Assembly (NCBI GenBank): GCA_030704615.1
Contig: CM060734.1
Coordinates: 26,164,001 to 26,228,000 of the forward strand
Length of the DNA: 64,000 nucleotides
Direction of reading: 5' to 3'
Source: Takakia lepidozioides
Taxonomy: Eukaryota > Plantae > Bryophyta
The notes beneath the pieces are model-generated. The model searched no databases. It was not told the origin of the DNA and was given only the letters and a program-made list of their open reading frames with translations. A program made the position numbers and the translations under genes. This document shows positions 1 to 63,467 of this stretch, one piece after another; within the stretch, counting starts at the first letter, position 1, and the number at the start of each line of letters is the position of its first letter.

Positions 1-527
1 CCGAACCTAGTCGTGTACAGCAGATTTTAGACGAGGCAAACCTCAAGAAAATGAAGATGAGGGAGGAGGCAGCAGCTATTAGAGCCCGTCAGACTCGTAG
101 ATTTGTCTTGGATTCTGCTGAGGAAAGTGGGGGAGAAGAGGCAGAAGATTCCCAGGAGGTGAGGTGGACAGTTCCCCAAGGAGATCACGGAATTTTTTAG
201 AGACATAGTGGAACTGATGCATCACAGAACTCGGAGGATGGAGAGGATGAGGGGGAAGGCGGGACAAGTTCCTCGGAGGGTGTAGGAGAGTAGTGCCCAT
301 TCCGGCTATGACAGTTACGACACACTTGTATAGATGTGGCTTGCCACAAAATTTGCAATAAAATGTTGCATTTTATTGCTATGACGAGTCCACGGGTGCC
401 AAATTCCAACTTGATATGACCCTATTTCTGTGCCTCCTAACCCTATTTCCGTGGACAAACAATGGTCTGCTCATGTTTTTTTTTTTTTTCCGCTCATGCT
501 CATGCCGCTCATGAAATAACAACCCCC
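1..527 (+). mobile_element. Terminal segment of a second, inverted copy of the large ParB/MTase element (rest lies left of the window)
   Basis: 1-527 is the reverse complement of ~54007-54532 (e.g. ccgctcatgctcatgccgctcatgaaataacaaccccc vs gggggctgctatttcatgagcggcatgagcatgagcgg). Similarity stops abruptly after CCCCC at 527. Confidence 0.85.
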
Positions 528-12600: not shown

Positions 12601-15600
12601 CATCTCCTTGGCCCTGTCTGCATCCAATCCCAACACCGTCGTGTCCACCTGCTCCATTGATAACAGAAAAGCACATGGCTGTTGTCAAGATGCATCTAAC
12701 AGAACTCTAAACCACGACCGTCATTGCCTAGGGACAAATGTATAGTGTGGGCTGACAAGGTAAGGTCTTTAATGATGCTCAATTGTATGAGGCAATCGGG
12801 TTGTAATAGTAATGAGCCTTAGTGGCTCTCATGATGTTTTATTTCTTCAACATGCCCTCCTCCATCAAGCCTGACAAGTGTTACCCAGCCCAAAGGAATA
12901 GCTCATCTTTGGCATATTGGCAGCATGTAGACAATTTCTTCACTTACCAAAACCCGTCTACCAACTGCAAAGAATGCAACACTCTTCAATTCACCTTAGC
13001 ACTGAAAGTTGTGGCTAATGTGGCCCAATTCACAGCCTGGACCTTGCCAACATGAACAGGGAAACCCAGGATGAGAGACAATATCTCATCATTTTCCATG
13101 CAATATATAAGCTGTGCTTGGCACATGCACAAATTGGTGCAATGCTGATATCTTGGTCAGACATTGCCTCAATCCACCAGTTTCTCTACCTCCCTCTCTT
13201 GAAGTCCCTTTGTTAATTTGTCTCAGGCTCTCTGAAGTTTGGTGAACTGGGTCACCAAACTTATTGGTCAGCACTTGTGAAGTGCAGATAGATGACTGCC
13301 TCATCCTTACCATTTTCCGCAGCATGCTCTTTTGTTGGAAAACCAACCTACACAGAGTATTCCACACAGTATACACATGACATCAAATTAAACCGTAACT
13401 TTAATCGTTAGAGGTGATGAGGGTAGATTGAAGCCTTTTCCCCCTCCCCAGGTATAAGATTGTAATGCACCTTCATAGCTCTGAGGGCATTCCCTTGTGG
13501 TTTCTCTGCAAACTCCACAATGCGCCCCTTGTCATTGATCTTCATCAATCCAAAGGCAGTGGCTCGTGCTTCATCCATAGGCAATGCTGCCACAGTAATA
13601 TCAGCATTCGTTTCCCGGTGAACCTGGATAAATTTCTGGTAGTCCATACGATACAAATGGTCCCCAGCCAACACCACAAACTCCAAGACTTGTGCCTCCT
13701 CGAACAGCCACAAATACTGCCTCACTGCATCAGCTGTCCCCTGCAATGAAACCAATCATCATCCTATGTAAGTACATAATAACAACTCCATAGTCTAATA
13801 GTGTGGTCAATCACAAATTCTCAGACCATCAACTTCATCATGTGTGAAGTGACAAGCTGCAACCACTCCCCACTGACTTCATCAGCTCCCCACAGTGGGT
13901 GCAGATCTTATATTATACTAGATTCAAATTCCTGGGCATACCATTGTACAAGTCTTCATACTGACTTTCTTGTCAGTAACAAGGTTTTGGCAAGAATGTT
14001 TTGATACCTGAAACCAGTTTGGGTTTTCAGGACTCTGCTGCGCAGCCAACACCTCCACAAAACCCTCATTCTTGTAGCCTCCCATGTTGCTTGCATATGC
14101 ACGTGACAGGTGGCGATTCAATGATGCTGAGTTGAATTGGGTGAGCACATAGATTTTGTTGATGTTACTGTTGATGCAGTTACTAACGGGGATATCAATC
14201 AACCGGTAGTTAGCACCCAATGGTACTGCAGGCTTTGCGCGCTTCTTTGTCAAAGGGTACAACCGAGTCCCAGCTCCACCTCCCAATATGATTCCCAATA
14301 CGCTCTGCCAATAGAACTACAGTTGTCAGCCAATTTGAAATAAGACGGCCATATTTGAGGCTGATCATTTACTAGACAGACCTTCAACCCAAGCACCTTT
14401 GAATTTCTGCAGCAAAGCTACATAAAAAAATTGCCAGATGTAACCTTATGCACATCTGGCTTGGCGTATGGAGTACATTCTGAGCACAGATGGGGCTGGG
14501 ACATGTTGTAAGGAAAAGGAATTCATAGGTTTTTGCACCCAACTTGAGCTTACAGCTTCTTTTCAGCTACGCACGGTCCCTTACACACTATGCCACTGTT
14601 GTTCTCAGGTACATCTCCATTTGAAAATCGGAACAGAAAAAGTGTTCAAATAGCTGAAATGTACCTTTCACTGCTATTTATACTGAAATACGATCTAGTT
14701 TTTGCTAGCAGTTCCATGCTGTGAGGACTGTCACCCTAGCTTTAAGGATGCTTATAAAATGAACATTCAAAATTCCACGAGATAACTCACTTGTTCCTGT
14801 CATGAAGAAGCCTTAAGAAAACTTGTTTTTCTTATCAAGGTAAGTCAGTTTCACAAGTCAGGCCACTACCACCTTCCAAATTATTCCAAGACACGGGTCA
14901 TGAGAAGACGACCCACGGGTGCCCAGACGAACTGGATGGGAGAGCTGCATTCTTGAACATTAATGCATTCATTTGGCTTTTCCGTGATGGTATCTTTGCC
15001 GCCCGCATTATATCTAAGTAGATATCTTTCAAGTGCACCATCAAAATCCCACTTCAAGTAAGTAATGGTGTCTGGTAATGCAGCTAGAACTCCTGGAATC
15101 TTTGAAGTCAACCATCCAATGCTTCAAGAAAAATTGAACACCTACACACTTTTTGAAGGTCTTAAAGACATATCACAGAAGATCTGCTTCGGCTTTCACA
15201 AACAGAATTTCAAGAATAAAGACACCATAACTCCATTCTACGAATCATACTACCAGGATCTCGATTCACTCACTTCTGTCTACATTTCTATCAAACACTA
15301 CCTGCATTCACCACCAAGATGACATCAAACCACGCGTAATTATTCCGATTTAAGGTTCAAGAATCCAAACCAAAAGACAAACCTAGTACGCCAAATCCAG
15401 ACCGGTGGACTTACCCGTCCAGCATCAGGGTCCAAGCAAGCTTCTCCGACGATCTGGGAGTCGGAGACAGCCCTGGGGGAGACAATAGCCCTTGAGTGTC
15501 GGCCCCAACCCCGTTCATTAAACGATGTGCATGCCACCCCCGTTCCCCGGACCGATGAAGCAATCGACCCCAAGTGTTTGCAACCACCTGCGAAAAATGC

Positions 15601-25599: not shown

Positions 25600-27520
25600 T
25601 CTCTTGAGCAACTTGGGTGGTGCAAGATTGGTCCACCCAACCTAGGTCTATGTGTCCGTCACCCCACTACAGCTGCATCCAATAATACAGCTGGTCCAAT
25701 CATGACCGGATTTGATGTACACTGGCCATAACCCTAGCCCAAGAATCCCCCATGAGAGGAACATTCTCCAGGATGTAAGCTGGAGGTTGCACTTGCCTCA
25801 CTAGCAAGTCACGCAACACTCGCAACATCTCCCAGAACAGATGCGATCTTGCATCATGCAAACCATTACCATGACATGTGAGAGAATGTCCTTGCAGGCA
25901 AAACCACCCTGCTATCACCAAGTCAATGGGACCATGCCGGTCCATATCTTCTGCCTCCAGCATGGTAATGTCTGCTGGCAAGGCCTTTTGGTACCCTTGA
26001 ATTGCTGAGAAGGGCAACAATTCAGGATACTGGTGTGCGAGCAAGGCAATATGGCGCATGGAAACACGCCAAGCAATCTCATCCTTCTTCACATAAAAGT
26101 ACTTGCATACTGGGATCCGTGCTTACAACACTCCTGCAAGCCCAGTGCTCATGCCTCGAAACAAGTCTAGCAAATAAATCCCTGAGTCAGGGGTTTGCCA
26201 TGTAACGGGCACTATATCCAAAGGTGCTAACCGAGGAGGTCCAGGTGAAGCTGCTGAACTCCCCTCACTCACCGATGGGAAGGCCTCCTGCCATGTTTGC
26301 TGCACACACTGACCTATTACCTGATGCAGATTCCCAACTGTACCCACAGTGGGCTATGAACATGCACATGAGGAAGCAACTCAGCCTTGTATGCCAATTG
26401 CCTCTCCTCACCAGGTGGTGGGATATCCTTCGCATGCCTATTGCCCTCCAAGAGCTCACCATCCCAAGCCACCACACCTGAGAATGCAGCCAATGTGGGT
26501 CTCATATTCATATGATCCACGGCTATATTCCCAATAAACCGCACCAGGAGCAGTGCACGTCGGCCATCCCCTGACTGCCATCCCGACCTATAGGACGTTG
26601 TTTCCTCCCAGAAATCAAGAGTGAAACCCATAGGGTACAACACAGCCCTATCAACAAGCACATCGTACGACATTGCATCCGTAATAATGGCTTTTGTTCT
26701 CATGACTGAGCCATGTGTAGGATGATCTGACTGCAATCGAATGAAGATCGAGCTCATGGCGTGTGATCCCTCGTGCCTGCTCTGAACCACCTAGAGACAT
26801 CTGAATCTGGAAAGGGCAAGGCTCCAAATCTGCCTTTGTAAGGCCCAAGCCTGCAATTGCCGCCCTCCCCAATATCAATGGTTGAGCTCTCGAATCCAAC
26901 AAGACACGCAGTGGCAGTTGGGCCACCCAACTGAGAACAAATTTTTTTGGTTATCCACCAAGACTATTCCAGGAGTCACCATAGCGTGCTCGATAGCTGA
27001 CCTTGCTGGTAACTCTTGCAACCTTGCAGTTGCTGTCTGCCATGGCGCAGCTATGGCTGTCTTTACCTTTGGATCCACAACATCATGCATAGACTGCACC
27101 TTATTTGCTATCCCCACAGACAATGCTGAAGCATCACCATTCTCACATAGTGTAGCTGTCAGTCTTCACTGCACAGCTAGCCGAATCCTCGGCATTGTAA
27201 TTGTCATTGCAGAAAACAATGGAGCCTGGCAAATTGCCATAGCCGCCCCAACAATGTACTAGTTGTACCTTATGCATTGACATCCCCCAAGCCATGCCAG
27301 CTATCTCCAATGGCACTCTTGGCTCTACCTCTGACACACTTGGGCGAGCCGGCACCATCGATGGTGTGATTGGCACTGTCTTGGCCAACGTGAAAGACTG
27401 GGGAAGCCTTGTCTGTCGACTTGTTTCCCCTCTCTGTGGATCAAAATCCACATCCGCTCCCCTTGGCTTAGGAGCACGAATTGCTGCTTGAGTGACAGCA
27501 GCTACAGAGTCCACATGCAA
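25600..27520 (-). mobile_element. Older, degraded copy of the protease-DNMT retroelement
   Basis: Fragments VLLDSRAQP, LLDLFRGMSTG, IDLVIAGWFCLQGHS and YILENVP, colinear with 49660-51570 but with many frameshifts. Confidence 0.85.
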
Positions 27521-29309
27521 TGGTCCTGCAAGTGCACAGATTGCAAAGTTCACTGTATGGATGAATAAATTCATACATGGATGAATAAGTTCACATATTG
27601 TCTTGCTTGTTGGACTTGGTTCGAGTGCAATCTGCCATAGCTTGACAAGCTACTGAGCTGGTTAGGTATACATCGGGGCGCCGATGCAGCTCAAAGGAAA
27701 GAGGGAGCGGTGATGGCGGTTTCATAAATGATCGGTGATTGATGATAAAAGGGTCTAAGACGACTGAGAACCTGCATTTTGCTTAAGGGTAGACCCGGCT
27801 TATCCATTATAGTGGGAGAGAGTGCCTCAGAGTTATGAGGATGTAGTGAGGTTTATCTAGCAATGGGGGCGGCAAGAGCTGAATGTCATGAGGCCTGGAG
27901 GTGAGCAATTGTTACTCGAGCAGCAGCAGCGGTGACGACATGAGCAAGGTGGTGGCTGCAGCGACGGACAGCTCGACAACATGGGGGGGGGAATATAGGC
28001 TGAGAAGATCTGCAGTAAGACATAGTATTTAGTCATCGTATTGGAGACTAGCGATTCTTCTTCTTTTTGCTACGACTTGGAGCAGAACATGCAAGTTGGA
28101 GAGATAGCTTTGCAATGGCCTTAGGGGGGTGGTGAATGAAGCTGTGACAGAGTGAATTCAAACCAGATGGAGTCCTATGTAGAAAGAGCTGGTGTGTCTG
28201 CATTCTGGCTTTGTGAGAAGTGTATTCATTGTTGGTAGTGGTGTAGATGTTGCAACCTTTGTGACAATGAGGTCTATTGTATATGAGCTACAGTTTGTCT
28301 TGTTTCAGTAGAACTAAGTCAATTCGTTGTAGTAATGACCACAATGGAGGGGATGTTGAGTAGGTAGGATTTATGGCTCATTGTAGTCATTGGGGTTTAT
28401 GTTGGAATGTTGCATGTGGTAACGTTTGTATTTAGTTTGCTGCAGAGTATGGTGGTCATAGCAGGTAGGCCAAGGATTCCTGTGATGACATGTTGCACAC
28501 ACAAGGCCAACATGATGGGCTCAATGTATTTGCATAGCATATAGGCTGTAGTAAAATTGGTGTAAGGTATTGTGTTTGCAAACACAACTTGCGGCTGTGA
28601 GAAGAGAACATGGGATGGGAGAGAGACCTGAAAATGCACATCATAAAGTGGCTGGGAGCATGCTGAAGTAAGAAAGAGGAAAGACCATGAGATGTTTGCA
28701 GGGTTCTGGAGTAATTGTTCATTAAAAAAAAAACCTGCTGGGATGTTGAACTGACTGAATTTCACTAAGTTAGAGAGATAGGCAGAACAAGAAGAGTTGT
28801 GAACCTGCCATGTATGTCTGCCTTGTCATGATGTAAGGAAGAGAACAGGGGATGGGAGAATGATCACATCTGCATTCATGATCTGGAAAGAGGGGCTGCA
28901 TACTCAAATAAGCTAAGAGAAACACCCAGAGATGTCTGCAGTCATACTCTGTTAGAACTGAGACCAAACAAAGGAGTGTTGTCAAGCTGGGATCATCATG
29001 AATGTATCTAGAACTGAGGAAGAAAAGTTATAATGAGCAAGCCATAGCTGCATACTTCCTAGTGGAGACACTAACCCAACAATTGTGATGGTGTCTTTTG
29101 TGATGAGCACATGACTGACCATGTTGGCTATGCAATCATCAAACATATTGGTAACAATCTGAGAAGTATAAGGGGTAGACAAATTACTTTTATATGGCTT
29201 ATCTTTATCTTCTCTTCCGCTGTGGTGGGGGTAAGTCTGCACTACTCTGGTCATAATCAATTTGTAAGTAACACTACCTAGGCTTTTAGGCCATTTCTTT
29301 TCACCCTAC

Positions 29310-29690
29310 AATGGGGTCCTCCACAAACCCAACATGACACACCCGCCTGTTGCTGACCTGAGAATGAAGGGAGAGACCTCTGCATCTGAGTTCCTCTCTG
29401 ACCTTCACTGGGCTTCGTCTGAGCCCCCTTGTTGCCTTGAGCGCGTTGGGGTGGTTGTTGTTGTTGGCTAGGAGCATCACCCCGTAGTGACTCCTTACCA
29501 AACCCCACCATAACCACCCGCTTCTCCACCATATTGAGCTTTATCCGCTCTGCTAGCAAAAACACATTTACTAAGATGGGTTGGTCCATTTGTAGGAGAG
29601 TTGCATCCCATACCAGAATTGGACTGCCTGAGCTTCCGTAACCCCTTGGGTTACATTTATCAAGCGCCTCAAGCAAGTCTAAGCCTCCTG
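29310..29690 (-). mobile_element. Gag fragment of the same retroelement family
   Basis: Near-identical to ~51980-52371 with an internal deletion (NVFLLAERIKLNMV, CWVCGGPH). Confidence 0.85.
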
Positions 29691-30231: not shown

Positions 30232-31220
30232 TCAAGTTCGGGTGTCTCCTGTGACCAAATTGATAAAGCCATAGGAGGATTCAGGGTTAGGCTTAGTCAC
30301 GTGGAAAACACACATTACAACATACCCATTGTCAAGACAAGAGTGTCTTGCGGTGCTGGACGAGACGTCGTCCGACAACATTACGGGACCTTGAGGGAAC
30401 GTGCGAATATTCTTGTCAACTTGCCCTGAATCCTCTTCTCCGCCAAGTTGGTCATCAATTCGTTGTCTCACTGGACGGGTGCGAACATCTCCTTCCAGGT
30501 GTGAACCTCTCTCGAAGCAATGCAGGCGTGTCACGAAGGTTCTCTTGCAAGGCTGCTGCCCACTTCCGAGGATTCTTGATATGAAGGCCATCCGCATTAG
30601 CATTTCCTGTCTGTCCAGTCCCAAGCCCCACTGTTTCCCTTTCAAAAACTTGTTGTACCTGGATTGCTGCATGATTGACCTCACAATGTCCTCCGTTGTG
30701 GCAGTGATCAGTTTGTTTACTAGATGTGCCGCAGAGGAGGCACGCCATGAAGAATGCACTGATTCGGCCATGTTTGTTGTCGGCATGTCGGTGTCGGAGT
30801 CCAAACACAAATCCTTCAGATGCACATTCTCAGATTAGAAGCAAGTTACAAAGCATTGACAACCATAATATTGTTGGGGACGTGAAATCGTTCAACTCAC
30901 CTACCGCATATACTCGCCGATCTGTCCAAAACAGTAATGCCACCAAACAAGCCAACTGACCATTGCTCATTTTTATTTTTACAGCACCTGAAGTTGTCCA
31001 CCAAGCCCGTATACATGCAAACTCTGTCTCTGCATCATCCAAAGTGGGAGGATTCTTCCATGCAAGACACATGGAACGGTGGTCCTCTCTGAAAGCTGGT
31101 GCCACGAGTTTGGTTGTGTATTGCGACAAGCTCTGTAGAAAATGGAACCCCCCCGATACACCCTGTTGACTGTTGTCAATCGTTCCATGAGTGGGCTATT
31201 CCATTGGCCTATGCCCACAG
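30232..31220 (-). mobile_element. Mutator (MULE)-like transposase pseudogene
   Basis: FHFLQS (C.FH..Q-type motif, ~31133-31148), WW/LLFW helices and TTNMAESVHSSW (TnN.aES.h catalytic-Glu motif, ~30745-30782). Frameshifted. Confidence 0.65.
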
Positions 31221-49007: not shown

Positions 49008-49165
49008 GCAGTACTCCCTACCTACTCAGTCAGTGACAAGGCCTCATCCTGCCCCATCATCTCATCCTCAAGGACTTCCTCCACCTGAGAAAAATCCCCA
49101 ACCTCATCTATCACCGCCACCTTGGCTGCCAACTCCCTCTGAACCTCGAGCACCTCCCACGTGTG

Positions 49166-50240
49166 TCATGGATGCCTGCACACCGTGGTCCTCACATGCT
49201 CGCCCCCACTCACTGCCTGTACCGTCTCGGTAGGCAGAGAGACCATCGAGGGAAGTGTACTCCGCACTCTGCGTTGCTCAGCCATAGCCAAGCTGATAAT
49301 CCAGGTCAAGCAATTTAGATCCATTGTTTGCCCCAACTCCTGACGACGTGATGCCTCAGAAAGAGACGACACCGCCGTGGTACCAGTGGTAAAACCCATT
49401 GCCCGCTCACGCTCGTCAGCATTAGGCTCCACTAACTGCTGCAACTGAGCATCCTACAGGAGGCCAGGTCCACTATCCCGGAAAGCATGCGATCCTGGGA
49501 AGCTGAGCAGTGTAGGTAATGCTACTCGTGGTTGACCCACTTTGTTGACCACTGCCAAAGGCGAATGGTCATTGTGTCTTTCATGCTGAGACTACCTCCC
49601 TGTGTCCAGAATGCTATCCACTGTGAGAGGTGTTGGCCGCTGCACCCCATCAAATGCACGCTTTAGCAGTGCGGGTGGCATCAAGTTAGTCCACCATAGT
49701 CGTGGACGATAAGCCCGTGACCCCACTGTAGCTGCAACTAGCAACACTGCTGACCCAAGCCACGACCGGACTTGATGCACACTGGCCATCACCCTGTCCC
49801 GAGAATCGCCCATCAGTGGCACATTCTCCAAGATGTATGTTGGAGATACAGCTTGATGAAGCTGCAAGTGGCGCAAAACCCGCACCATCTCCCAAAATAG
49901 ACCCAACCTTGAGTCTCGCAATCCATTGCCATACCCGGCTTATGAATGCCCTTGGCAGGGCCAACCTACCACTACCAGATCAATGGAGCCAACCCGCTCC
50001 AAATCCTGCGCCCCCAGCAACGAAATGTCTACTGGCAAGGCCTGCTGATATCCACGAACTGCAGACACCGGCAACAACTCAGGGTACCGCTGTACCAACT
50101 GAGCAACATGGCGAAGTGAAATGCGTCGTGCAGTCTCATCCCTCTCCACATACAGGTAACGCCAAACTCGTACACCTGCCTGTAACATAACAGCCAATCC
50201 GGTGCTGATCCCGCCAAACAAGTCCAGAAGACAAATGCCT
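49166..50240 (-). pseudogene. C5-cytosine DNA methyltransferase domain, complete motif set, with in-frame stops
   Basis: Motif I LLDLFGGI, II YVERD, IV IDLVVVGWPCQG, VI ILENV, VIII RPRLWWTN, IX ERERAMGF..GTT, X RRQELGQTMD. Single frame, with stops at 49940, 49592 and ~49455. Confidence 0.88.
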
Positions 50241-53049
50241 TCATCCGGATACTGCCACACAATAGGTGTGGTGTCCAATGGAGACAACTGAGGTGGTCCT
50301 GGTGCAATCCCCGCACTCTCCTCCTCTCCTGACGGTACAAAAGCCTCCACCCAGGCTTGTTGTACCCGTTGATCAGCATCCTGCTGCATTATTTTGCTCG
50401 TGCCCCACAATGGAGTCTGAGCAACCATGGTAGGCAACTCCGCCATACCATACATGTCATCCTGCTCTCCCGGAGGTGGCACATCCTCTGAATGAGCGTT
50501 GCCCTCAAGCAACTCTCTAGGGCAACTCACTGCTGCTGTGAATGCTGCTAGTGTCGGCATCTTGCCTCGCTGGGCAACCGCAACTCCTCCTATGAACGTC
50601 ACAGGGAGCTGCACACGCCGGCCCTCCCCTGACTGCCATGCAGGCCTATAGGAAGCTGACTCCTCCCAAAAATCCAGGGTGAAGCCCATGGCGTACAACA
50701 CTGCCCCACCAACCAGGACATCGTATGAGACCGCGTCTGTCACAATGGCCTTGGCTCGCATTACTGAGCCATCTGTAGGGTGATCCAGCCATAGTCTGAT
50801 AGCCAACTCACGCCGTGTCATGCCCCGAGCCTGCTCTGATCCTCCTAGAGACGTCTGTATCTGGAAAGGACAAGGCTTCATATCCGCATCCGTGAGGCCC
50901 AAGCCTGCAATAGTAGCTCTACCCAGCATCAATGGCTGAGCTCCCGAGTCCAACAAGACCCGCAATGGCCGGTACCTCTTGCCTGCCGGTCCACTCAAAC
51001 AGAAAATGTCATCCTAGTTGTCTAACATGACAACTCCAGGTGTAACCATGGCGCGCTCAATGGCTGGCCTAGCTGGCAGCTCCAGCTTGCCATGGCGCTG
51101 CCGTGGCAGTCTTGACCCTCAAATCCGAGGATCCCTCGAGCACTACACCTCCCACTATCTCCGCAGAAGATGAAGTAACCTCCCCACTCTCACAGAGTGT
51201 AGCTGCTAGCCTGAACACCTCAGCTGGTCTTACCCCCGGCATCACAATCATGGTAGCCGAGAACAATGGAGCCTGGCATATAGATGTTGCCGCTCCTAGC
51301 AGCACACTAGCTACCGTAGCCTTGGCAACACTAGGTAGCGGTGCTACCCGTGTAGCTCTCCCCAATGGCATAGTAACCTCCGCCTCGGTAACAGTTGGGC
51401 GAGAACTAGGTGCCATGGATGGCGTCGACACTGTCTCCGCCAATGTGAATGACTGAGGAAGCCTAGCCTGACGGCTTGCCTCCCCACGCTGTGGATCCAA
51501 CTCCACCTCTGCTCAAGAACTCGTGCTGCACCTCGAGTCACGACTGCAGCAGACTCCACCTGCACTAGTGGTAGTGCTGCTCCGCACATGAATCCCATGC
51601 CTCCCATATCTCCTCCCTCAGGAGCAGGAGGTGGACCATCCGGCCTTGGAGGTGGTACCACCTGAGTTGTAGCCATGGCAGCGAGCCTATGCTCTAGCTA
51701 TTGAAGCCGGTTGGCCATGCCTTGGTCAACACCCTGACCTCCGCGTCCTTGGCCATGTTGAGCTTGCCCTTAGCCTACACCCCATGCCTGGCCACCTTGT
51801 CCTCTTTGGGCTGCTCCCCCTCGCCCCCGGCCACCATTGTTCCCTTGGAACTGGCCTGGGCGAAACTCGGGATGCAAACCATAACATTGGGCCTCTCCAT
51901 GCCTGTGCTTGCCACAATGCCCACACTGCAACTGTGCAGGCTGCCAGCCTTTTGCCTCCCTCTGGACAATCCTTTTTGACGTGGGGTCCTCCACATGTCC
52001 AACACACCACATCCGCCCGTTGTTGGCCTGCAAATGAAGGGAGAGACCCCTGCATCTGAGGTCCTCTCTGCCCTTCCCTGAGCTTCATCTGAGCCCCCTT
52101 GTTGCCTTGAGCACGTTGAGGTAGTGGTTGGCTAGGAGCACCACTACCCCGTGGTGTCTCCTTAGCAAATCCCACCATGACCACTCGTTCCTTCACCATG
52201 TTGAGCTCTATCCACTCTGCCAGCAAAAACACATTTGCTAAGGTGGGTTGGGCCACTTGTAGGAGAGTTGCATCCCACACCCTTCTCCTCAGCTCCTTGT
52301 TCAATATCCCATAGCAGAATTGGACTGCCTGAGCTTCCGTAACCCCTTGGGTTACATTTATCAAGCGCCTCATGCGAGTGAAAGCCTCCTGAAGCTCTCA
52401 GTAGGCTTCCGTTGGAACTCTTGCAAGCTCCGCAACTTCTCTGTCCTCACCCCTTGGTAGTTCCCTCTCAACTCTTCGAAGAACCCCACAACAGGGTTGA
52501 AGGCAGGCACGGGTACTGGTGCTGGTGCGGTAGTAGCTTGGGTGGACGTCGTAGCTACAGTACCACCAGTCCTACTAGTCCCACTGCTGCTTGCTGAAGC
52601 TGTCGGTGCAGCGGCAGGTGTAGCCACTGCCCTCGTGACTCTAGTGCCCGTAGTGATAGAGACATAGTCGGGTGACCAGTACATCCTCCACTCCTCGATC
52701 TCAACCTCATGCCCTCGCCTAAACTCATGGTAATCATCCATAGGCGGCCCCTCAAGGTGTTGAAACAGCCCCTTCCATGCCATGAAAGGTGTAAATAGTT
52801 GTGGATTGCGCATTTGCTGCAAATCACACCAACTATCAAACTCTTGGATAAAAACATCCAACTCGATGGTGCCCACCACCCCAGAGTACCTTCGTGGCCC
52901 CTTGGTAGCTCCATACATCTCCTCCATTGTGTCCCACAACAATGGCCACAGCCTGTCACTTCAAGAGCCATGCTCTATCTAGGCTTGAGGTTGAAACCCC
53001 AACTCAGAACACGCTCTACAAGTGTCGGACTGTCACATAAGAGCAGATC

Positions 53050-53460
53050 AGCCCCTTACCTTCTCTTCTAGTTCTCTAAAGCTTGAAAACAAAAGCCCAA
53101 TGGACTGAAGGCATGCTCCACACATGCCCCACTCTCACCACCAGAGAATCAGCCCATTTGCTTTCTTTCTTGCACCCACCAACCTGAAAATACACGCTTC
53201 AGCGGGCTGGAAGCATGCTCCACACATGCCCTACAGGGAAACCAGCCCCTTCCTTCCTTTCTTGCACTCCCAAAACTGAAAATACAAGCCTTCAACAGGC
53301 TGAAAGCATGCTCCACACATGCATTGCTCTCACATAAGGGAAGTCAGCCCTTCCCTCTTCCTTGCTTGCCCTCCAAGCTTGAAGATGGAAGCTTCAATGA
53401 GCTGAATACATGCTCCACACATGCAACCTCTTCACACAAGAGGTATCAGCCCCCTATCTT
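53050..53460. repeat. ~100-bp tandem repeat (4 units) in the retroelement leader
   Basis: catgctccacacatgc near 53112, 53214, 53307 and 53409, each followed by a cagccc motif. Confidence 0.8.
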
Positions 53461-54227
53461 GGTTCCTTAGCTCCTTGATGCTCTCTAAGACAAGACTAAG
53501 CACTCCACAGCCCTTGCCAAGCTCCTGAAACCCTAAGGCTTACATTTCCAGCCACAAGACACTCTTCTTGTGGTGCAAGAGCTCTTCTTCCAAGCTCTAA
53601 AACCCTAGGTGCACATTCCATGGCCTTGCTGCACCTCTTAGCTCCTGTTCCAGCCCTGCTCTTGCCATGACAAGAGCCCTCTCAATGCTGAAGCTTGAGA
53701 TTGAAACCCAATCTCAACATACTCCACAAAGTGCACTGATTTGCCCCAAGCCAAATCAGCCCTTTCGCTTGGTCTTGCAATCCTGCAGCATGGTGCTTTC
53801 ATCTCTGAAGCTGAAGATCGAATGCCAAGGTCTACCACCTTGTAACCCACATCGCCTCCACTTCTAACAACCAAGAGCTCCACGGTGCTCCTTGCATAAC
53901 AACCTCCACTCCAGGGCCTAAATCTGCCTTGACCCCTGGATTGACACTTGGGCCAATCCCAAATGTCAATATGTAAAAGCTAGCTATTTCCTAGCTAGTT
54001 TCACACGGGGGCTGCTATTTCATGAGCGGCATGAGCATGAGCGGAAAAAAAAAAAGCATGAGCAGACCATTGTGAGTCCACGGAAATAGGGTTAGGAGGC
54101 ACGGAAATAGGGTCATGTGAAGTTGGAATGTGGCACCAGTGGACTTGAAATGCAACATTTTATTGCAAATTTTGTGGCAAGCCACGTCTATACAAGTGTG
54201 TTCTAACTGTCATAGCCGGAATGGGCA

Positions 54228-57200
54228 CTACTCTCCTACACCCTCCGAGGAACTTGCCCCACCTTCTTCCTCATCCCCCTCATCCCCCTCATCCTCCGAG
54301 CTCTGTGATGCATCAGTTCCACTATGCCTCTCAAAAATCCCGTCCTCTCTTTGGGGGACTGTCCACCTCACCTCCTGGGAATCTTCTGCGTCTTCTCCCC
54401 CACTTTCCTCAGCAGAATCCAACACAAATCTACGAGCCCGACGGGCTCTAATAGCTGTTGCCTCCTCCCTCATCTTCATTTTCTTGAGGCTTGCCTCGTC
54501 TAAAATCTGCTGTACACGACTACGTTCGGAACACCTCCTAATGGACACCGAAGCAAGCCGGGCAGCATAAGTAGGAAGGATGTACTCCCTTTCTGGACTA
54601 GGCATGAAATCCCCCCTGGCAAAAAAAAGGCACGTTCCTCCTGCCCATGAACTCCGGTGTAGACGTCCCTCCGGGAGTACTTGGCATCCTACAGTAAGAA
54701 CAAATCCACTTGAAGAATGTCAATACCATCACAACCAGAAAGGGTTTTCAATGAAATAAGAGAGCGGAGGGAGGTGCCTCACAAAATCTGGAGGCAACTT
54801 ACAATGCCACCACTCACTCGTAAACCGGGGGCTCCTCGGCCTCGATCCCAACTTCCTCCCCCTGCTCCTTCTCGGATTTTTCCTCATCCTCCGAGGATGC
54901 CTCTTCCTCTTTCGGCAGACGTTCAGCCGCTGCAAATTCCGAGTTGTGGAGGGCAGTATCTGGCTCGAAGGCGAACACATGCCTGTCGGACAATGTCCCT
55001 GTCCACATTGAAGCACCTGAGGAACAAAGCGGGCGGTTAATAGCTTGCGGCATGCAATTGCAATGGGGCCAGGGGACAAACTAAGCACGTGAAGGCTTAC
55101 CCGTGCCGCATGTGAGGTCCAGAATCCGCCCTTGGACATCCGAGCACGTCTCCATGAGGGTCTGGATGAAAGCAGGGCTCCGGGTCCGGCTGTACCGCCA
55201 CGGTTTGCCTGTCTTTGTGTCCTTCGGCATACTAGAGTGGGGCACATAGTTGTAGAGGACATCGTAGGTTACAGGGTCCACAGCGGCATCAACAAGACGA
55301 CCGTCGTTGTGGAATTTGAACGTAGACCCTCTCTTCACAAAGCAATATGCCTCAAACACCAATGTCTGCACATCCAACAAAGAAGGGATCAATTCCAGGG
55401 TCTACTTAACATACACCACAATATGAAGTGAATGCAATAGATTGATAACTTACACTTTGGCCCTCTGTTCGCAACCCCTGCGTACTGATGCAGAACCATT
55501 TTCTGAGGAGGACCGGGGTGACACTTTTCGGTGTCCACCTTGCCACCGCATTCTCTGTGGTCTTCCCTCTCGTGGCAAGGACAACCACACATCCACCGTC
55601 ATCCAGAAGCATCCCCGCCAGCCCAAACCCGGCTTTCCAGTAGTCCTCAGTAAACCTGTTCCAGGTGGGCACACCATCCAGGCCCTCCAGCAGCTCCCCA
55701 TCTAGAATGTCGAGGAGAATCATGTCGCAAGCTCTCTCCACCTCAACCCCCCCCCGAGTGCTCTTGCAATTCGTGCTCACAGCCGTGAAGAATTCCATCA
55801 TGGCTTCAAAACCAGGGGTGTCTTTAGGCTCTGTACCGGCAGCCCTCTTCTTGGCTTTCCCCTTCTGCTCCGCCAGAGACTTGTTGTGTGCCACCTTCTT
55901 CGCCCTGGCAGCGAGAGCGTCAAGGAAGCTCTCATTGACGCATTGGATGATGGTTGGAGGTTCTAGCTTTGGCCTGTGCGTAAACGTCACCGCCGAATAC
56001 CGCCGTATAGGCTTGCCCTCAAATGCCAACTTCTTGGCAGAGCCAGTCCCACTCCGAACTGACTTGGGAACCCGGACGACCGGTGACTGGGTAGGAGCAA
56101 CAGCAGTCGCAGGACCTTGAACAAAATCGGCGTCGGAGTCACTCTCTTGGGTCCCCTCCTGCGCCTCCTCCGATGCCCCGATGGTTTTCTTCTTTTTGGG
56201 TGTTACTGCAGTCACCTGTTTCCTTGTCCTTTTCCTTTGACCTTTACTCTTCTCATGCAATTTCTCTTGAATTCCTGCCTGAGCAAGCTCTGCCGCTTTC
56301 CTGGAGTTCGCAAGCGCTTTTGCCTCTTTTGCACCCAACGGAGGCAGCGGAGCCCGGTTTCGTCGGAATTCAGCATCCAGCTTCAATTGAAACTCGGATG
56401 GGTCGAGCGAGCCGGGCGGAAGGTCCACATACCAAGGGCAATCACGCAAATGTTCCAGATGCCACTCCTTCACAATATCGTCAGTGTACATGGAGTCAGC
56501 CCCAGGGTTCCTCCATGCCAGGAAGAATGGTGGCTCGAAAGACAGATGACCTTTCTCCAAAAGGGAGAACTTACAGTACCTGCATTCATGAAAAACACAA
56601 TGAGGTCCGAAAATGGCTAAGTCCCTGAACGGCAATAGGCCCTACAACTGGAATATGGCGCCGAATTTCCACTTCAGGGCCACCCAGTCTAGGGACTTAG
56701 CCCGAAAATGGCTAAGTCCCTGAACGGCAATACGGCCTGGAACTGGAAAACGGCGCCGAATTTCCAGTTCAGAGCCAGCCAGTCTAGGGACTTAGCCCGA
56801 AAATGGCTAAGTCCCTGGACGGCAATAGGGCCTAGAACTGGAAAACGGCGCCGAATTTCCAGTTCCGGGCCAGCCACCCTAGGGACTTAGCCCGAAAATG
56901 GCTAAGTCCCTGGACAGCAATAGGGCCTAGAACTGGAAAACGGCGCCGAATTTCCAGTTCCTGGCCAGCCACCGTAGGGACTTAGACCGAAAATGGCTAA
57001 GTCCGTGGACGGCAATAGGGCCTGGAACTGGAATATGGCGCCGAATTTCCACTTCAGGGCCAGCCAGTCTAGGGACTTAGCCCGAAAATGGCTAAGTCCC
57101 TGAACGGCAATATGGCCTGGAACTGGAAAAGGGCGCCGAATTTCCAGTTCAGGGCCAGCCAGTCTAGGGACTTAGCCCGAAAATGGCTAAGTCCCTGGAC

Positions 57201-60200
57201 GGCAATAGGGCCTAGAACTGGAAAACGGCGCCGAATTTCCAGTTGCGGGCCAGCCACACTAGGGACTTAGGCCGAAAATGGCTAAGTCCCTGAACGGCAA
57301 TAGGGCCTAAAACTGGAATATGGCGCCGAATTTCCACTTCAGGGCCAGCCAGTCTAGGGACTTAGGCCGAAAATGGCTAAGTCCTTGAACGGCAATAGGG
57401 CCTGGAACTGGAAAATGGCGCCGAATTTCCAGTTCCGGGCCAGCCAGTCTAGGGACTTAGCCATTTTCGGAGCCCTGACTGGAAATTCGGCGCCATTTTC
57501 CCTAACACCACTTGAGGCCTCTAACATCCTGAAATGCCAGGACTTGAAAGAAAGGCAGCGCGTATGTACCTGTACAGAAGGCGCATTGCTGCTTTGTCCG
57601 CGTTCGGCTGGTCGGTGAACTCGTGGCTCCGGCGAGCATCTGCTATCTCCCGAAAGAATAGGTTGGTTTTGTAGAGCAGAAAGTACCTCGTCACATAGTC
57701 ACGTAGGCTCTCTGCTGCAGGAGATATCTCCATCTTGAACTGATGTGCTTGTGTGTCCAGCTGCTCTTGCGCATTCGTCGTCACCTGTGGAGATTGTCCA
57801 TCAGATCGCTTTCCTCAAAAAATACAATGAATCCACCCCCTACTAGAGTAGAAGCCCCAAACGAAGCGTGGGGAAGTACCTGAAACCACCATGTCATGCG
57901 GTTCATCCACATGTCGAATGTGGGGTCAGAGAGTTTGTCCGGTTTGGGGAAGCTCCACATGTCCCTGGTACTTTGGGAACCATTCCAGATTTGGAGCCAC
58001 CGGGTCTGTCCAACCACCCAGCATATTCGTAAGCGCCAAACACCACAAAAAGGAGTTGTTGCCACCACAATTTTGTTAAGAATGTATCACCTTTTCTGTT
58101 GCATCCACACAGGATGTGGCTAGATGATGGAGTTTCTCCAATGTCATCGTGGGCTTCAGAGCGCGAGAGTAGTGCTTCCCCACCTCCACCAGAAAGTCGG
58201 CACCAAGGGCGGGATCAGCTATGGCCACGTACTTTACCATCCGCGACTTGTACTTTATGCGGGCCCTCACCTCCGCAGCTTTGACATACGATTCGAGTTC
58301 CGGGAGGGTTGGATTCTTCTCCTCTGACTCCATGTAGAACCTCCGCGCATGTGCCAAATCCTGCTGTATTTTCGTCTGTCAAGAATGCGCACATAAGATT
58401 AGAAATCCTGCTCAACACAATTTCTTCTATTGGGGGAGGAGAGACAGATTAGCTCAACAAAACTGTCAGGAGCTTTACCCGAAATATGTAGTCCACCATG
58501 GCGTCGACGCTCAGCCTATACCAGGTTCTGTCTGCCTTTGCCTCCGACTTGCGCAGGAGGTCGGCACTGAGGGAATTGGCAAACTCTTGCACCCCCTGCT
58601 TCCCGACATCCTTCACTCGGAAGAGCATATGGGACAAGTTGGTGGCAATGAAGGCATTCTCAGTCACCCTGCAGTGCCACATTTCCATCAAACAATACTG
58701 AAATGGGAATTTTCATCATATATGAGGATTCGCAATGAAATGACTTCCAAATTCAAAGTCCAAAAGCGAGAGGGGTTGTAGCTTACGAGTTGATGTCGGC
58801 CATTGCAGCTTTGAGAAGACTGCGATCTTTGGGCCCCGCAACCTTCAGCACAACACAATCGACAGCGAAATGCCAATCGAGATCGTTGGGTGGGCTTGGG
58901 CAATGTGCTCCATCCATGCCAGGAGGCGATGATTGCCGTCCCACACGTAGAACATCTTACTGGACATGTGCTGGAAAAGAGGATCACTAGCAATCGATCT
59001 CTCGAACTCCTCATTTCGCGTTTGCCAATGGGGACCCCATTTGTCCACCTCATCGGAAGTGTGGGCACGGGAAGCTCCATGGTCGTTCTCAATGGAAACG
59101 TAAAAGGCGGCAGACCCCATTCGATATCCATCCCGGAAAGAGAATTTCAGCTTGTCGATATCGCCTGGGAGGGCAGGTCTCACCACCTGCAATGACACCA
59201 AGCGGCAAAGGGGAATTCGAAGCTTGGCCGGGTACACCATGCCCCCCAGCACCCTGCCAATGTTGCTGTGGGTTGCCTCCAACATCTTGGCAGCGGCCAA
59301 CTTCATATCCGCCTCAGACATGACGTCTGCTGCATAGGGATTTTCCGGCAGCCCACCAGGACCGCCAAATCCAGCCTGTATGCTCCGGGTTTGGGGCCTG
59401 GGGATGTCCGGGAGGATGTCATCCTGGTCAGAAACCTCCATGTCGTCCTCCTCAACAGGGTCAGCCACCTGCGAAACCACCTCCAGCACTCTCGTCGTCT
59501 CTACTGCCCTCTCCCTGGCTTCACCTCGAACTTGCACAATCCGTGCTCTTTCAGGTGTTCTTTCCTCTCCTCCACTCTCCACCGTATGGGTAATTGCGGG
59601 GGCTGCTCTTGCCCGCGATGGTCTAACCGGTGTGCTACTGCATCTCTGTGGTGTCTTGTAGGGATCCACCGTCTCTGTGGGTCCCTCGCTTACATTGGCA
59701 TCTGTCATTTGGGCACCCCTGGCCTCTTCAGCTGCCTTTTGTCTTTCCTCCTGGCTAGCATTCTGTCTCGTCTGTTCTTTTGCCCTCTCTTTTGCCCTCT
59801 CACGGGCTTTCTGTTTCTTACTAGGGCTAGCAGCAGGGGAGCCCTCCAGGACGACCACCTTTGATTGAGGCGAACTGACACCCTCGCGCGCACTGCTCAC
59901 TCCCCCCTCCGCAGCCCGTGACTGCTCTCTCGCCGGGGATTGCATGTGCTTAGCTTTCTTCTTTTTCTTTGCGTGGGCGGGCCCTACTGCATGTGCATGA
60001 ACAACCTCCATTGCCGGATCTGCTGTCCTCATGTTCTCACGCCCTTCACCTGCCATGCCGCCTGCACCAACCTCCCCAATGCCTACTCTGTCGTAATCTC
60101 GTTGCAAGTCCTCCCGTCCACCAACAAAAGGTTTAAGTTTGCCCTCTCGCCCCAAGTTGGGCGATTCAAACATGCGATGAGTTGGAGCTGTCGATGATAC

Positions 60201-60203
60201 CAC
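54228..60203 (-). CDS. Multi-exon gene: disordered N-terminus, ParB/Srx-like domain, helical region, beta-class N4C/N6A DNA methyltransferase-like domain, acidic tail (at least one frameshift near 58886; exon model partial)
   Basis: LRIPLCRL..VVRPAL..MFYVWDGNHRLLAW (~58915-59225); DMILLDILDG and LLDDGGCVVV (55580-55726); RSPAFIQTLMETCSDVQGRILDLTCGT|GASMWTGTLSDRHVFAFEPD, joined across a GT-AG intron at 55100-55017. Further gtaa donors near 58787 and 58478. Confidence 0.65.
56606..57500. repeat. Nine 95-bp tandem units, each with nested inverted repeats, probably intronic
   Basis: ccgaaaatggctaagtccct recurs at ~56607, 56702, 56797, 56892, 56987, 57082, 57177, 57272 and 57367. Each unit has ctaagtccct..agggacttag and aactggaa..ggcgcc..tttcca.tt. 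Confidence 0.95.
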
Positions 60204-61009
60204 CAGCGTGCCGGGCTCGTCGTCACTCTGTCATTGACAAAAATCGTGAAAACCAACATCGGTGCAAAAAGCAGCATCGCAACGAGCAGCGCAACCACCA
60301 TAGCAACAATCATGTAGCAAAAATGAAAACATAACAAGTTTAGGAAGTATGGAGAGCCATGCAACAACAATGAAAACAAATGCAACCATTGCCTAAGAAT
60401 GACATGCACAAACAGCCTTCTCCAGAGCTCCGGATTTGCACACGCATTGCAAACAATCTAAGGTTCACTCAACTATCTAAAGTTCACTCATACAGCAAAG
60501 CCAGGATGAAGATGCAAAAACAAAGCGAGGTAACAAAGCGAAAGCAAAAAATAAATCGAACAAACCGAAAGCAGAAGTGGCTTGCCTGAGAGTACTCGGC
60601 TTCAGTTGGCGCAGGTTGTGAGCAAGACACTGGAATCTCCTGCTGGAGCTTCAGTTTGGCCATGCGAGAGATTGGCCGTCGTCCGTAGTACAGAGCTTTC
60701 AACTTCCGCCGCGGTCTGGATGTGAGGTCTCTCTCAGGAGAGCCACGCCCTTCAGGCGGCATAAGTCCCAGCCAAAAAGATCTCCTTTTTTGGGGTACAT
60801 GCCTGGAATACCATGTTAAGCCAAGTTTAGCATGAGATTTAGGGTACGTGTCCAGGAAGCCATGCGTCGCCAGCCCGAATAATAACCGACGGCCGTCGAC
60901 ATTTATTGCCCAACTGCGCAATTAAATATCGGATGAAGCCCTCCATGTCGGATGAAAATCGACGTAAACAGTCCCGGAATTTCCAACGTACAGGTAATTC
61001 GGAGCGCTG

Positions 61010-63185
61010 CACGTTGGAATTCCGGCGACGGATTTCCATCCTGCAGGTAATTCGGAGCGCAGCAGGATGGATATCCGGCGCCGAATTTCCATCCGCGGAG
61101 GAAGGGCAGCGGTGGAAATTTCCCTCACGCAGGTAATTCGGAAGCCCGCGGATGGAAATCCGGCGCCGAATTTCCATCCGCGGAGGTAGGGCGGCGCTGG
61201 AAATTTCCCTCACGTAGGTAATTCGGAAGCGCGCGGATGGAAATCCGGCGCCGAATTTCCATCCGCGCAGGTAGGGCGGTGCGCCAAATTTCCCTCACGC
61301 AGGTAATTCGGAAGCCCGCGGATGGAAATCCGGCGCCGAATTTCCATCCGCGGAGGTAGGGCGGCGCTGGAAATTTCCCTCACGCAGGTAATTCGGAAGC
61401 GCGCGGATGGAAATCCGGCGCCGAATTTCCATCCGCGCAGGTAGGGCGGTGCGCCAAATTTCCCTCAAGCAGGTAATTCGGCGCCGAATTTCCATCCTGC
61501 AGGTAATTCGAATCCCGGATGAATGGAAATTCGGCGCCGAATTTCCATCCTGCAGGTAAGTCGGATCGGTGCCGTATGGATATTCGGCGCCGAATTTCCA
61601 TTCGCCATGTATTTCTGCGCGAGGAATTACCTTCGTGCAGGTAATTTCCATATAAGAATTACCTTCGTGCGGGTAATTCCCATATAAGAATTACCTTCGT
61701 GCAGGTAATTCCCAGATGAGAATTACCTTCGTGTAGGTAATTATGGACGAGGAATTAACATCGATTGGAATTACCTGCAGGAAGGTAATTCTCATCTGGG
61801 AATTACCTGCAGGAAGGTAATTCTTATATGGGAATTACCTGCACGAAGGTAATTCCTCACGCAGAAATACATGGCGAATGGAAATTCGGCGCCGAATATC
61901 CATACGGCACCGATCCGACTTACCTGCTGGATGGAAATTCGGCGCCGAATTTCCATCCATCCGAGATTCCACTTACCTGCTGGATGGAAATTCGGCGCCG
62001 AATTTCCATTCATCCGGGATTCGAATTACTTGCAGGATGGAAATTCGGCGCCGAATCTCCATCCATCCGGGATTCGAATTACCTTCAGGATGGAAATTCG
62101 GCGCCGAATCTCCATCCATCCGGGATTCCACTTACCTGCTAGATGGAAATTCGGCGCCGAATTTCCATTCATCCGGTATTCGAATTACCTGCAGGATGGA
62201 AATTCGGCGCCGAATCTCCATCCATCCGGGATTCCACTTACCTGCTGGATGGAAATTCGGCGCCGAATCTCCATCCATCCGGTTTCCACTTACCTGCTGG
62301 ATGGAAATTCGGCGCCGAATTTCCATTCATCCGGGATTCGAATTACCTGCAGGATGGAAATTCGGCGCCGAATCTCCATCCATCCGGGATTCCACTTACC
62401 TGCTGGATGGAAATTCGGCGCCGATTTCCATTCATCCGGTATTCGATTACCTGCAGGATGGAAATTCGGCGCCGAATCTCCATCCATCCGGGATTCCACT
62501 TACCTGTTGGATGGAATTCGGCGCCGAATCTCCATCCGGGGGATGGTCTCTGTCGGAGCGGTGCCGCCTCTCGCCGGCTCTGTTGGATATTCGGTGCCGA
62601 ATTCCGTCCGGGGGTTGAAATATGACGGCCAGGTGCCGACCTCTCCCTTCTCCCCGACTGCATTGGAACGGCCCCGAATTGAAATTCGGCGCCGTTTTTC
62701 CCATCGGTGGAGGTTTTTTATGTCGGCCAGTTTTCGGTCTGACCCCCCGACAAGACTTCCTTTGGGGGGCCCGGATGGAAATTCGGCGCCGAATCTCCGT
62801 CCAGGGGATTTTCTCTGTCGCACACTCGCGGCCTCTGCGCCGAGGCGACTTCATCCGGAAGTCCCCTGTTCGATATTCGGTGTCGAATTTCCGTCCGGGG
62901 GTTGAAATGTGACGGCCAAGTGCAGGCCACTCCCCCTCCCCGACTGCATCCGAACCGCCCCGGATGGAAATTCGGCGCCGTTTTTCCATCTGGGGATGTT
63001 TTTATGCCGTCCTGTTTTCGGCCTGACCCCCCGACACGACTCCCTTGGGGGGCCCGGATGGAAATTCGGCGCCGAATCTCCATCCAGGGGATGTTCTCTG
63101 TCGCACACACTCCGGCCTCTGCGCCCGAGGCGACTTCATTCGGGCTTCCTCTGTTGGATATTGGGTGCCGAATTTCCATTCGGGG
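61010..63185. repeat. Array of the 22-bp palindrome GGAAATTCGGCGCCGAATTTCC (>20 copies or variants), with large-scale mirror symmetry centred near 61760
   Basis: The palindrome recurs every ~59 bp (61930-62530) and ~89 bp (61070-61430). 61490-61740 is the inverse of 61790-62050. There are 30-bp aattacc..ggtaatt units at the centre and ~290-bp units at 62530-63185. Confidence 0.95.
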
Positions 63186-63467
63186 TAGTAATGTGACGGC
63201 ACGGTGCCGGCTTCTCCCCTTCAGCCGTCATCATCCGGACGGCCCCCCACTTTCTGACTGCATACCGTTGGCAGTTATTGCGCAAAGACGAGGGGCCGCA
63301 TTCCGGAGACAAGGTTCATTAACACTCTGACTGTGGATTTTTGAGATAGTTGGCTCCCTGGATTTGGATCAGGCTTCGTCGCTCGGACAAATCGGCATCG
63401 CATTCGTTCCCATCGCTGCACCCCCTTCTACAGGGAGCTTCTCCGCACGCCATCCTGGCAGTCTTGT

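Follow-up and report, generated by a model that had tools for sequence, protein, structure and literature searches.

A 64,000-nucleotide stretch of the genome of Takakia lepidozioides (assembly GCA_030704615.1, contig CM060734.1, positions 26,164,001 to 26,228,000 of the forward strand; the whole of this stretch is referred to as the window) holds on its minus strand a nine-exon gene that runs from about 60173 to 54228 and codes for approximately 1,417 amino acids if the first in-frame ATG is used. We suggest that this is an accessory (cargo) gene of a repeated land-plant DNA element, that its product joins a domain of the ParB/Srx fold to a methyltransferase-like domain derived from the beta class, and that the protein would act through sites carried by the element itself. 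We hold this interpretation with considerable confidence. Coordinates within the window are collected in Table 1.

The exons were derived from donor and acceptor sites, homologues and read-derived contigs, starting from a chain of open, exon-sized open reading frames (ORFs). The start codon in exon 1 is uncertain, the ORF opening at 60203 and the first in-frame ATG lying at 60173. All eight introns are of the GT..AG type with phases that fit; seven of them measure 84-118 nt and intron 5 measures 990 nt. The introns between exons 2 to 5 (57570-58668, minus strand) are 103, 85 and 95 nt long, and the junctions of these exons agree with those of three related sequences (L002, P0001 and P0159). 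Contigs from X1 and X2, two public runs of the same organism that are guessed to be RNA, and from the DNA runs X3 and X4 were compared with the window. Four of the eight introns are skipped exactly in X1 or X2 contigs: one 770-nt X1 contig skips both the 84-nt intron 55100-55017 and the 88-nt intron 55453-55366, intron 5 is removed in an X1 contig, which links exons 5 and 6, and an X2 contig lacks intron 4; in addition, donor 54803 is joined to acceptor 54688 in contigs. Both DNA runs cover the introns contiguously. The 84-nt intron is the one across which an earlier reading of this DNA made from its letters only (the sequence-only reading) had joined LDLTCGTG to ASMWTGT, and this join is confirmed independently by the relatives L002 and L005, which carry the corresponding stretch DLTSSTGASLRASRASGRHFFGIEAD in a single exon.

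The N-terminal half of the predicted protein contains the motif DGNHR within the stretch IPLCRL (59199-59216)...VWDGNHRLLAW, in the ParB/Srx-like context in which the sequence-only reading had placed it. An exhaustive phmmer search of 1.84 billion proteins with the ParB-like exon returned 392 matches at E<=1e-3, of which 131 reach E<=1e-10, so that by sequence comparison this family of matches is far beyond chance. Those relatives that carry a species name belong to Riccia sorocarpa, a liverwort, and Adiantum nelumboides, a fern, and the closest relatives are from environmental metagenomes. The consensus of 49 family sequences reads IPLCRL..VRP..L..F..GY..FYVS..W..W..N..FE..VWDGNHRL.AW..WH..V.C..L..AMH..N and stops at the conserved exon boundary; the G, N and H of DGNHR are identical in at least 90% of these sequences. 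An AlphaFold2 model based on the 49-sequence alignment, built for its lead sequence P0001 (52% identical to the window exon), has a predicted local distance difference test score (pLDDT) of 91 and a predicted template modelling score (pTM) of 0.85. When this model was compared exhaustively with 48,161 chains using VIA-align, only 15 matches had Z>=2 and all eight matches with Z>=5 were ParB/Srx-fold proteins (KorB, 8.2; PadC, 7.5; SerK, 7.3; Srx, 6.5; SbnI, 6.1; pNOB8 ParB, 6.1; Atu1540, 6.0; human Srx, 5.4). The PDB matches given by Foldseek are weak (E 0.02 or higher) and consist nearly entirely of sulfiredoxin, Noc, PadC, SerK, ParB, KorB and SbnI, and the ESM Atlas neighbours of the model fall in ParB_N, HTH_ParB and DndB clusters (template modelling (TM) scores 0.50-0.62). 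Because the three structure libraries agree, we regard the assignment of the modeled domain to the ParB/Srx fold, as proposed by the sequence-only reading, as solid. Membership of the Pfam sequence family ParB_N (PF02195) is, judged from profile searches, not solid. A phmmer search of the window pieces against the PDB retrieved no ParB protein, and a word-indexed protein search with the 409-amino acid exon ORF gave no match, probably being swamped by low-complexity words.

The C-terminal half shows the motif order of the permuted beta class of N6-adenine/N4-cytosine (N6A/N4C) DNA methyltransferases, i.e. motif IV followed by motifs X, I and II, and all motifs quoted by the sequence-only reading were located on the minus strand. 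Window exons 6, 7 and 8 align to the relatives from Riccia and to L002 and L005 (tblastn of exon 7 against L002 and L005, E 3e-9 and 2e-11), and because they align to the motifs of these relatives we take the permuted order to be real on the sequence evidence: (i) window DMILLDILDG corresponds to DCLYLDLPTG in Riccia and DFIFFDVPFG in ferns, (ii) LLDDGGCVVV corresponds to ILDDRGCLII, (iii) RSPAFIQTLMETCS..ILDLTCGTG corresponds to GFVQTLLENFT..VIDFAGGWG, and (iv) VFAFEPD..EFAAAERL corresponds to FFGIEAD in L002. The window exons were searched against Pfam one by one, with relatives from Riccia and the metagenomes standing in for whole domains. The gathering cut-off of PF01555 (N6_N4_Mtase), 26.7 bits, is exceeded by two Riccia paralogues, P0168 with 31.7 bits and P0174 with 27.0 bits over profile positions 16-217 of 221. 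P0157, P0184, P0159 and the metagenome relative L002 fall just under this threshold, and the single exons of the window are below it. The five best matches of a family profile in the PDB are CcrM, DpnA/M1.HpyAVI and M.RsrI (E 0.015-0.05). The secondary-structure order of a low-confidence model of the domain agrees with the permuted beta order, and 15 of its 15 Foldseek matches at E<=1e-3 are beta-class N6A/N4C enzymes, which we read as local similarity only because the model is poor and the TM scores are low. Matches to phage sequences in tblastn are weak (E 0.006-0.04) and all are DNA methylases. As judged from sequence, the window and all lineages retain the G-x-G of the S-adenosylmethionine (SAM)-binding motif I and also the glutamate of motif II. 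In total, these comparisons support the descent of the domain from beta-class enzymes suggested by the sequence-only reading.

Several Riccia members of the family are automatically named 'Trimethylguanosine synthase' in UniRef, and the C-terminal domain could accordingly be taken for an RNA cap methyltransferase similar to TGS1. These names are all that speaks for such a function, which we find scarcely credible given that no Pfam match to the TGS1 family was obtained, the sole methyltransferase match being PF01555, that the motif IV region precedes X-I-II, unlike the non-permuted order of TGS1, and that the top PDB and Foldseek matches are all beta-class DNA enzymes. We therefore regard the UniRef name as unsupported.

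The two halves appear to belong to one gene, as the sequence-only reading had supposed. The ParB and methyltransferase halves are collinear in four independent lineages, and exons for ParB, for the central region and for the methyltransferase follow one another in this order also in L001-L004 (JGI metagenomes), in L005 (a 371-kb ENA contig), in Riccia and in Adiantum fragments; L001-L005 are 30-50% identical to the window, and the metagenome relatives are plant-like contigs. In Riccia, the full-length model P0159 (1,207 amino acids) has the same architecture, and a single ORF of 618 amino acids leads from the central region to that of motif IV. The ParB domain and the equivalent of exon 2 share one ORF in L002, and in Takakia the X1 contig that joins exons 5 and 6 links the central region to the methyltransferase exons. 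The conserved tail encoded by exon 9 aligns with the tails of Riccia P0174 and P0175 and with ORFs in L002 and L006. As a separate observation, a tail exon that is conserved (YRLPEYAEKRAGFLAQ..SFVLDEASDDNEG) is present in L006 at 13965-14282 (+), past the stop annotated for Riccia KAL3677308.1, and the 3' end of this gene is probably missing from the public model. Pieces of the methyltransferase-like domain also occur in the Riccia models P0187 (named Profilin) and P0191 (named heme peroxidase), which are probably annotation chimeras of transposon fragments and host genes.

Directly upstream of the gene, 26 copies of the 22-bp palindrome GGAAATTCGGCGCCGAATTTCC lie at 61069-63177. No copy of this palindrome is expected by chance, and apart from intron 5 it is absent from the rest of the window. 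Intron 5 holds a tandem array of nine 95-bp units (56607-57462) with ten copies of the half-site GGAAATTCGGCGCC. Altogether the half-site occurs 56 times in the window, always in intron 5 or in the upstream arrays, against a chance expectation of 0.01. Palindromes are also arrayed in the Riccia unit, where ATTCCGGCGAGGCTCGCCGGAAT lies between the two genes of the unit and CCAGCGGACCCCGCTGG lies downstream of the gene. The half-site ATTCCGGCG of ATTCCGGCGAGGCTCGCCGGAAT resembles the window half-site ATTCGGCG, and the whole palindromes differ. Because the palindromes of Riccia and the window differ while their half-sites are related, these sequences hint that the palindromic site and the protein co-evolve.

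Combining these data, we suggest a model in which (i) the element is, in the relatives of the window gene, a two-gene and probably Mutator-like transposon, (ii) its cargo gene codes for a ParB/Srx N-terminus, a central region and a C-terminal domain that probably descended from the permuted N6A/N4C DNA methyltransferases, (iii) the ParB-like part together with the central region would recognise the element's own palindromes upstream of the gene and in intron 5, (iv) the SAM-binding methyltransferase-like domain would thereby be placed on the DNA of the element, and (v) that domain may mark the element DNA or shield it from silencing by host cytosine methylation. A more far-reaching version of this model would have intact members act as self-addressed epigenetic writers, in which a nucleotide-dependent ParB clamp loaded at the palindromes carries an amino-methyltransferase that deposits N6-methyladenine or N4-methylcytosine on the transposon and antagonises silencing by 5-methylcytosine; we consider it unlikely.

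The location of the gene in a mobile element, proposed by the sequence-only reading, is supported. It agrees with a sharp terminus (CTCATGAAATAGCAGCCCCC) at 54007 and with multi-copy units in Riccia; the adjoining Gypsy-like gag does not belong to this element. Positions 54007-54529 are 89.6% identical to positions 527-1, and the flanks past the terminus are unrelated. Two Riccia chromosomes (L006 and L007) share a 10.8-kb unit, with 97.5% identity between them, in which the gene lies together with divergent ORFs, and homologues of these ORFs lie in the same divergent upstream position in L005 at 32% identity. In language-model features, on which this resemblance rests, the partner ORFs of Riccia and L005 look like Mutator-like elements (MULEs). 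Could the gene instead belong to a domesticated host gene family that spread by segmental duplication? Its introns and spliced transcripts, and the conservation of its domains across land-plant lineages, are compatible with a host gene. Such an origin would, however, have to accommodate the sharp common terminus with unrelated flanks, the fragmentary copies within a single 64-kb window, the conserved head-to-head pairing with a MULE-like ORF, and the presence in Riccia of at least 26 related gene models, many of them truncated, on records of seven different lengths. We consider it very unlikely and favor the interpretation as transposon cargo.

We also considered that the gene might be part of the adjacent Gypsy-like element (gag 51726-52942) and rejected this, as a second copy of gag (29305-29672) has no ParB-methyltransferase gene upstream. 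Two copies of this Gypsy-like retroelement are present in the window, at 25883-29672 (-) and 49160-52942 (-), with protein identities of 70-87% in the gag region and 56-72% in the downstream ORF; the gag ORFs have no Pfam match at E<=0.01. Between the element terminus and gag, diverged repeats of approximately 100 bp (73% identity) occupy 53049-53452. A reverse-transcriptase ORF at 10845-11510 (-; RVT_1, E 2.5e-16) abuts the 290-bp fragment of the gene tail, which suggests that a retroelement inserted into an older copy. An ORF at 30232-30825 (-) contains the motif TTNMAESVHSSW, and its segment 30586-30816 is 34% identical over 76 amino acids to a Riccia partner ORF (E 9e-7); it is probably a decayed MULE-like transposase fragment unlinked to the studied gene. 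In run X4, the summed contig depth over 54228-54827 is 5-15 times that of mid-gene, which, depth not being copy number, may reflect many 5'-truncated copies.

Several results weigh against the interpretation of the gene as a ParB-methyltransferase cargo gene with its own sites. For the N-terminal half, neither the ParB-like exon of the window nor any of nine relatives matched a ParB profile in Pfam at E<=1, the PDB gave no ParB protein when searched with a profile of the ParB alignment, and Pfam searches with ten window exon ORFs gave no credible family, the only two matches being sub-threshold and to unrelated families. A helix-turn-helix or other DNA-binding domain was found neither in the exons using Pfam nor in the central region using language-model features, the latter being uninformative. 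For the C-terminal half, the AlphaFold2 model, made from a shallow and mostly Riccia alignment, is poor (pLDDT 47) and unusable for superposition, and its Foldseek matches have TM scores of 0.2-0.28. Upstream of the gene in L005 and L001 there are no clear palindrome arrays. The partner ORFs have no Pfam match, leaving their assignment to MULEs without Pfam support, and neither a transposase partner nor the second terminus is present in the window; the place of a head-to-head partner would be beyond 64000, where the window ends. With respect to expression, the RNA status of X1 and X2 is only a guess, and the contigs with spliced introns differ from the window copy by 2-7% and, because of this divergence, show the splicing of paralogues rather than of the window copy. 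These contigs are unlikely to be retrocopies because coverage is confined to exons. In the X1-X4 contigs, none bridges the ParB exon to the methyltransferase exons and there is no transcript from exon 1 to exon 9.

A further reservation concerns motif IV, which the sequence-only reading had correctly described as non-canonical. The window has DILD, without both prolines and the aromatic residue of (D/S/N)PP(Y/F/W), L002 has DMPE, L005 has DMLE, Riccia has D(L/M)P(S/T) and ferns have D(V/L)PF. The catalytic tetrapeptide is thus canonical in no lineage, and D-x-P-F is retained only in ferns. Because motif IV is degenerate, amino-methylation by the protein of the window lineage is doubtful, and with DILD at this position the protein may act without amino-methylation or with altered chemistry. 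Alternatively, a protein of the same architecture could carry a methyltransferase-like domain that is catalytically dead, with SAM at most a bound ligand, and serve as a site-specific DNA clamp or bridge that aids transposition, the pairing of element ends or the occlusion of host silencing factors. The degeneration of motif IV in most lineages fits this alternative, as does the conservation of the remainder of the domain from liverwort to fern, and the methyltransferase domains of DIRS1 elements are a published precedent for inactive transposon-borne domains (PMC4738411). In contrast, retention of motif I and of the motif II glutamate in every lineage is unexpected for a pure scaffold, and ferns still have D-x-P-F. 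On balance, we regard a dead domain, and the clamp or bridge function that would go with it, as a serious possibility, if one short of probable. 

A separate issue is whether the window copy itself is intact. The sequence-only reading had noted a frameshift near 58886, and one base of a C run is indeed absent at 58887 relative to the family consensus. Every contig that covers 58887 has the length that preserves the frame, and because X3 and X4 contigs carry the extra base, the frameshift is either copy-specific or an assembly error. Exon 9 has an extra base in a run of eight T, and at 54621 the frame-preserving length is found in all contigs of X1-X3 and in about half of the depth in X4. In exon 8, an in-frame TGA (54814-54816) precedes the observed donor, and an alternative GTGAGT donor after 54818, in the same phase, could bypass it. 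The window copy is, then, either slightly decayed or mis-assembled at two homopolymer bases. It could also be a dead relic in which both frameshifts (58887 and 54621) as well as the TGA are real and which yields no full-length protein. The window sequence does contain all three defects, the element sits among nested retroelements, and the DNA contigs of X3 and X4 share only about 99.2-99.5% identity with the window and may stem from other copies or individuals. Both indels, however, are single-base differences in homopolymer length as is typical of assembly errors, the frame-restoring base is found in every contig that covers 58887, the TGA could be bypassed, and the remaining exons are without stops. 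We find a dead relic somewhat improbable.

Table 1. Positions of the gene, its motifs and defects, the repeat arrays and the other copies of the element (window coordinates except in the last row)
Feature	Position	Strand	Remarks
Upstream tandem arrays, periods 53, 85, 94	60977-63246		Hold palindrome GGAAATTCGGCGCCGAATTTCC
Exon 1	58787-60173	-	Low-complexity N-terminus, then ParB/Srx-like domain at about 59237-58787
DGNHR	58926-58940	-	Box II-like G-x-x-R motif of ParB/Srx fold; strand-helix turn
One-base deletion (frameshift)	58886-58888	-	C run; relative to family and X3/X4 contigs
Exon 2	58479-58668	-	Central region
Exon 3	58091-58375	-	Central region
Exon 4	57880-58005	-	Central region
Exon 5	57570-57784	-	Central region
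Intron 5	56580-57569	-	990 nt; spliced out in X1 contig
Exon 6	55454-56579	-	Conserved W-R-N-P / C-P-W-Y-V-D region (56423-56515), low-complexity linker, motif IV equivalent, LLDDGGCVVV
Motif IV equivalent DMILLDILDG	55697-55726	-	Exon 6
LLDDGGCVVV	55580-55609	-	Exon 6
Exon 7	55101-55365	-	Motif X and motif I; both flanking introns skipped in one X1 contig
Motif X RSPAFIQTLMETCS	55141-55182	-	Exon 7
Motif I ILDLTCGTG	55099-55125	-	Exon 7
Exon 8	54803-55016	-	End of motif I, motif II, helix EFAAAERL (54916-54939)
Motif II VFAFEPD	54958-54978	-	Exon 8
Exon 9	54228-54688	-	Conserved C-terminal tail; acceptor 54688 observed in X1
Extra base in T8 run	54621-54628	-	Exon 9; breaks frame
3' untranslated tail of gene	54007-54227	-	Common to partial copy at 1-527
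Element terminus (CTCATGAAATAGCAGCCCCC)	54007-54026	-	Homology with second copy stops sharply; other match in window only 508-527 (+)
3' end of second copy	1-527	+	Opposite orientation; cut by window start
Third-copy fragment, 290 bp	11495-11784	+	Exon 9 region; beside reverse-transcriptase ORF
Riccia palindrome arrays	L006:9096-9372, L006:14652-15166		Riccia sorocarpa CM100801.1

The statement of the sequence-only reading that amino-methyltransferases of bacterial origin are rare in eukaryotes needs softening, as similar cargo genes have been published for transposons of brown, red and green algae (PMC12477816). According to a 2015 survey, N6A methyltransferases are few in land plants (PMC4738411). 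The brown algal case is the Ectocarpus element Sola1-1_Ec32, in which a protein of 1,104 amino acids with ParB-like and N4C/N6A methyltransferase domains is encoded opposite the transposase and has been proposed to bind and epigenetically modify its own element, similar proteins being cited for green and red algal transposons (PMC12477816). The family described here likewise has a single protein of approximately 1,100-1,400 amino acids with ParB-like and amino-methyltransferase domains. It is probably carried by a DNA transposon, and the genes of Riccia and L005 are transcribed opposite to an ORF that looks like a transposase. Compared by description, the family differs from Sola1-1_Ec32 in the land-plant host, in the partner, which in Riccia and L005 is probably Mutator-like and not Sola1, in the degenerate motif IV of the window and in having one site array inside an intron. 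In the Plavaka elements of the red alga Bostrychia moritziana, a ParB-2OG-oxygenase gene (PAG3; 2OG, 2-oxoglutarate) lies beside inverted-repeat arrays, and an N6A-methylase occurs together with SET on a separate protein (PAG2) (10.1101/2025.02.11.637652). The window gene, unlike Plavaka, has ParB and methyltransferase in one protein, whereas PAG3 fuses ParB to the oxygenase.

In prokaryotes, phages and prophages are enriched in proteins that join the ParB-CTPase fold to an N6_N4 methyltransferase (PMC12704722), and ParB-Tls loci have been described (PMC4738411). These phage and prophage fusions share the two folds and their order with the window gene, and the module most likely comes from them in the end. 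They are compact, lack introns and have a canonical motif IV, whereas the window gene has approximately 600 amino acids of linker and central region, eight introns and a degenerate motif IV; in sequence, the link to the family is limited to the weak phage-methylase matches mentioned above. Among bryophytes, the sperm proteins MpDN4MT1a/b of Marchantia are active N4-cytosine DNA methyltransferases with a canonical TSPPY, encoded by host genes that are expressed in spermatids (10.1101/2021.02.12.428880). They resemble the window gene in bringing a beta-class, prokaryote-like amino-methyltransferase domain to a bryophyte, and differ from it in that no ParB domain or transposon context has been reported for them. 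Rotifers acquired the beta-class methyltransferase N4CMT by horizontal transfer; the enzyme is fused to a chromodomain, its activity has been demonstrated, and it is not carried by a transposon (PMC8885841; 8s9m/8s9o). It is among the Foldseek matches of the methyltransferase model and is likewise a beta-class protein in a eukaryote.

In conclusion, our data support the view that the Takakia gene represents, in land plants, the class of ParB-methyltransferase accessory genes on transposons that has been recognised recently, and our literature search found no paper describing such a cargo family in land plants. The family would extend a type of cargo recently reported in algae to liverworts, ferns and Takakia lepidozioides, and it corrects the misleading automatic 'Trimethylguanosine synthase' names carried by dozens of Riccia models. 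In addition, whether a transposon manipulates its own chromatin could be tested on this family, with the palindrome as a ready probe for binding assays. If intact members were indeed active, self-addressed writers, the family would constitute a transposon-borne, sequence-targeted DNA-modification system in plants.

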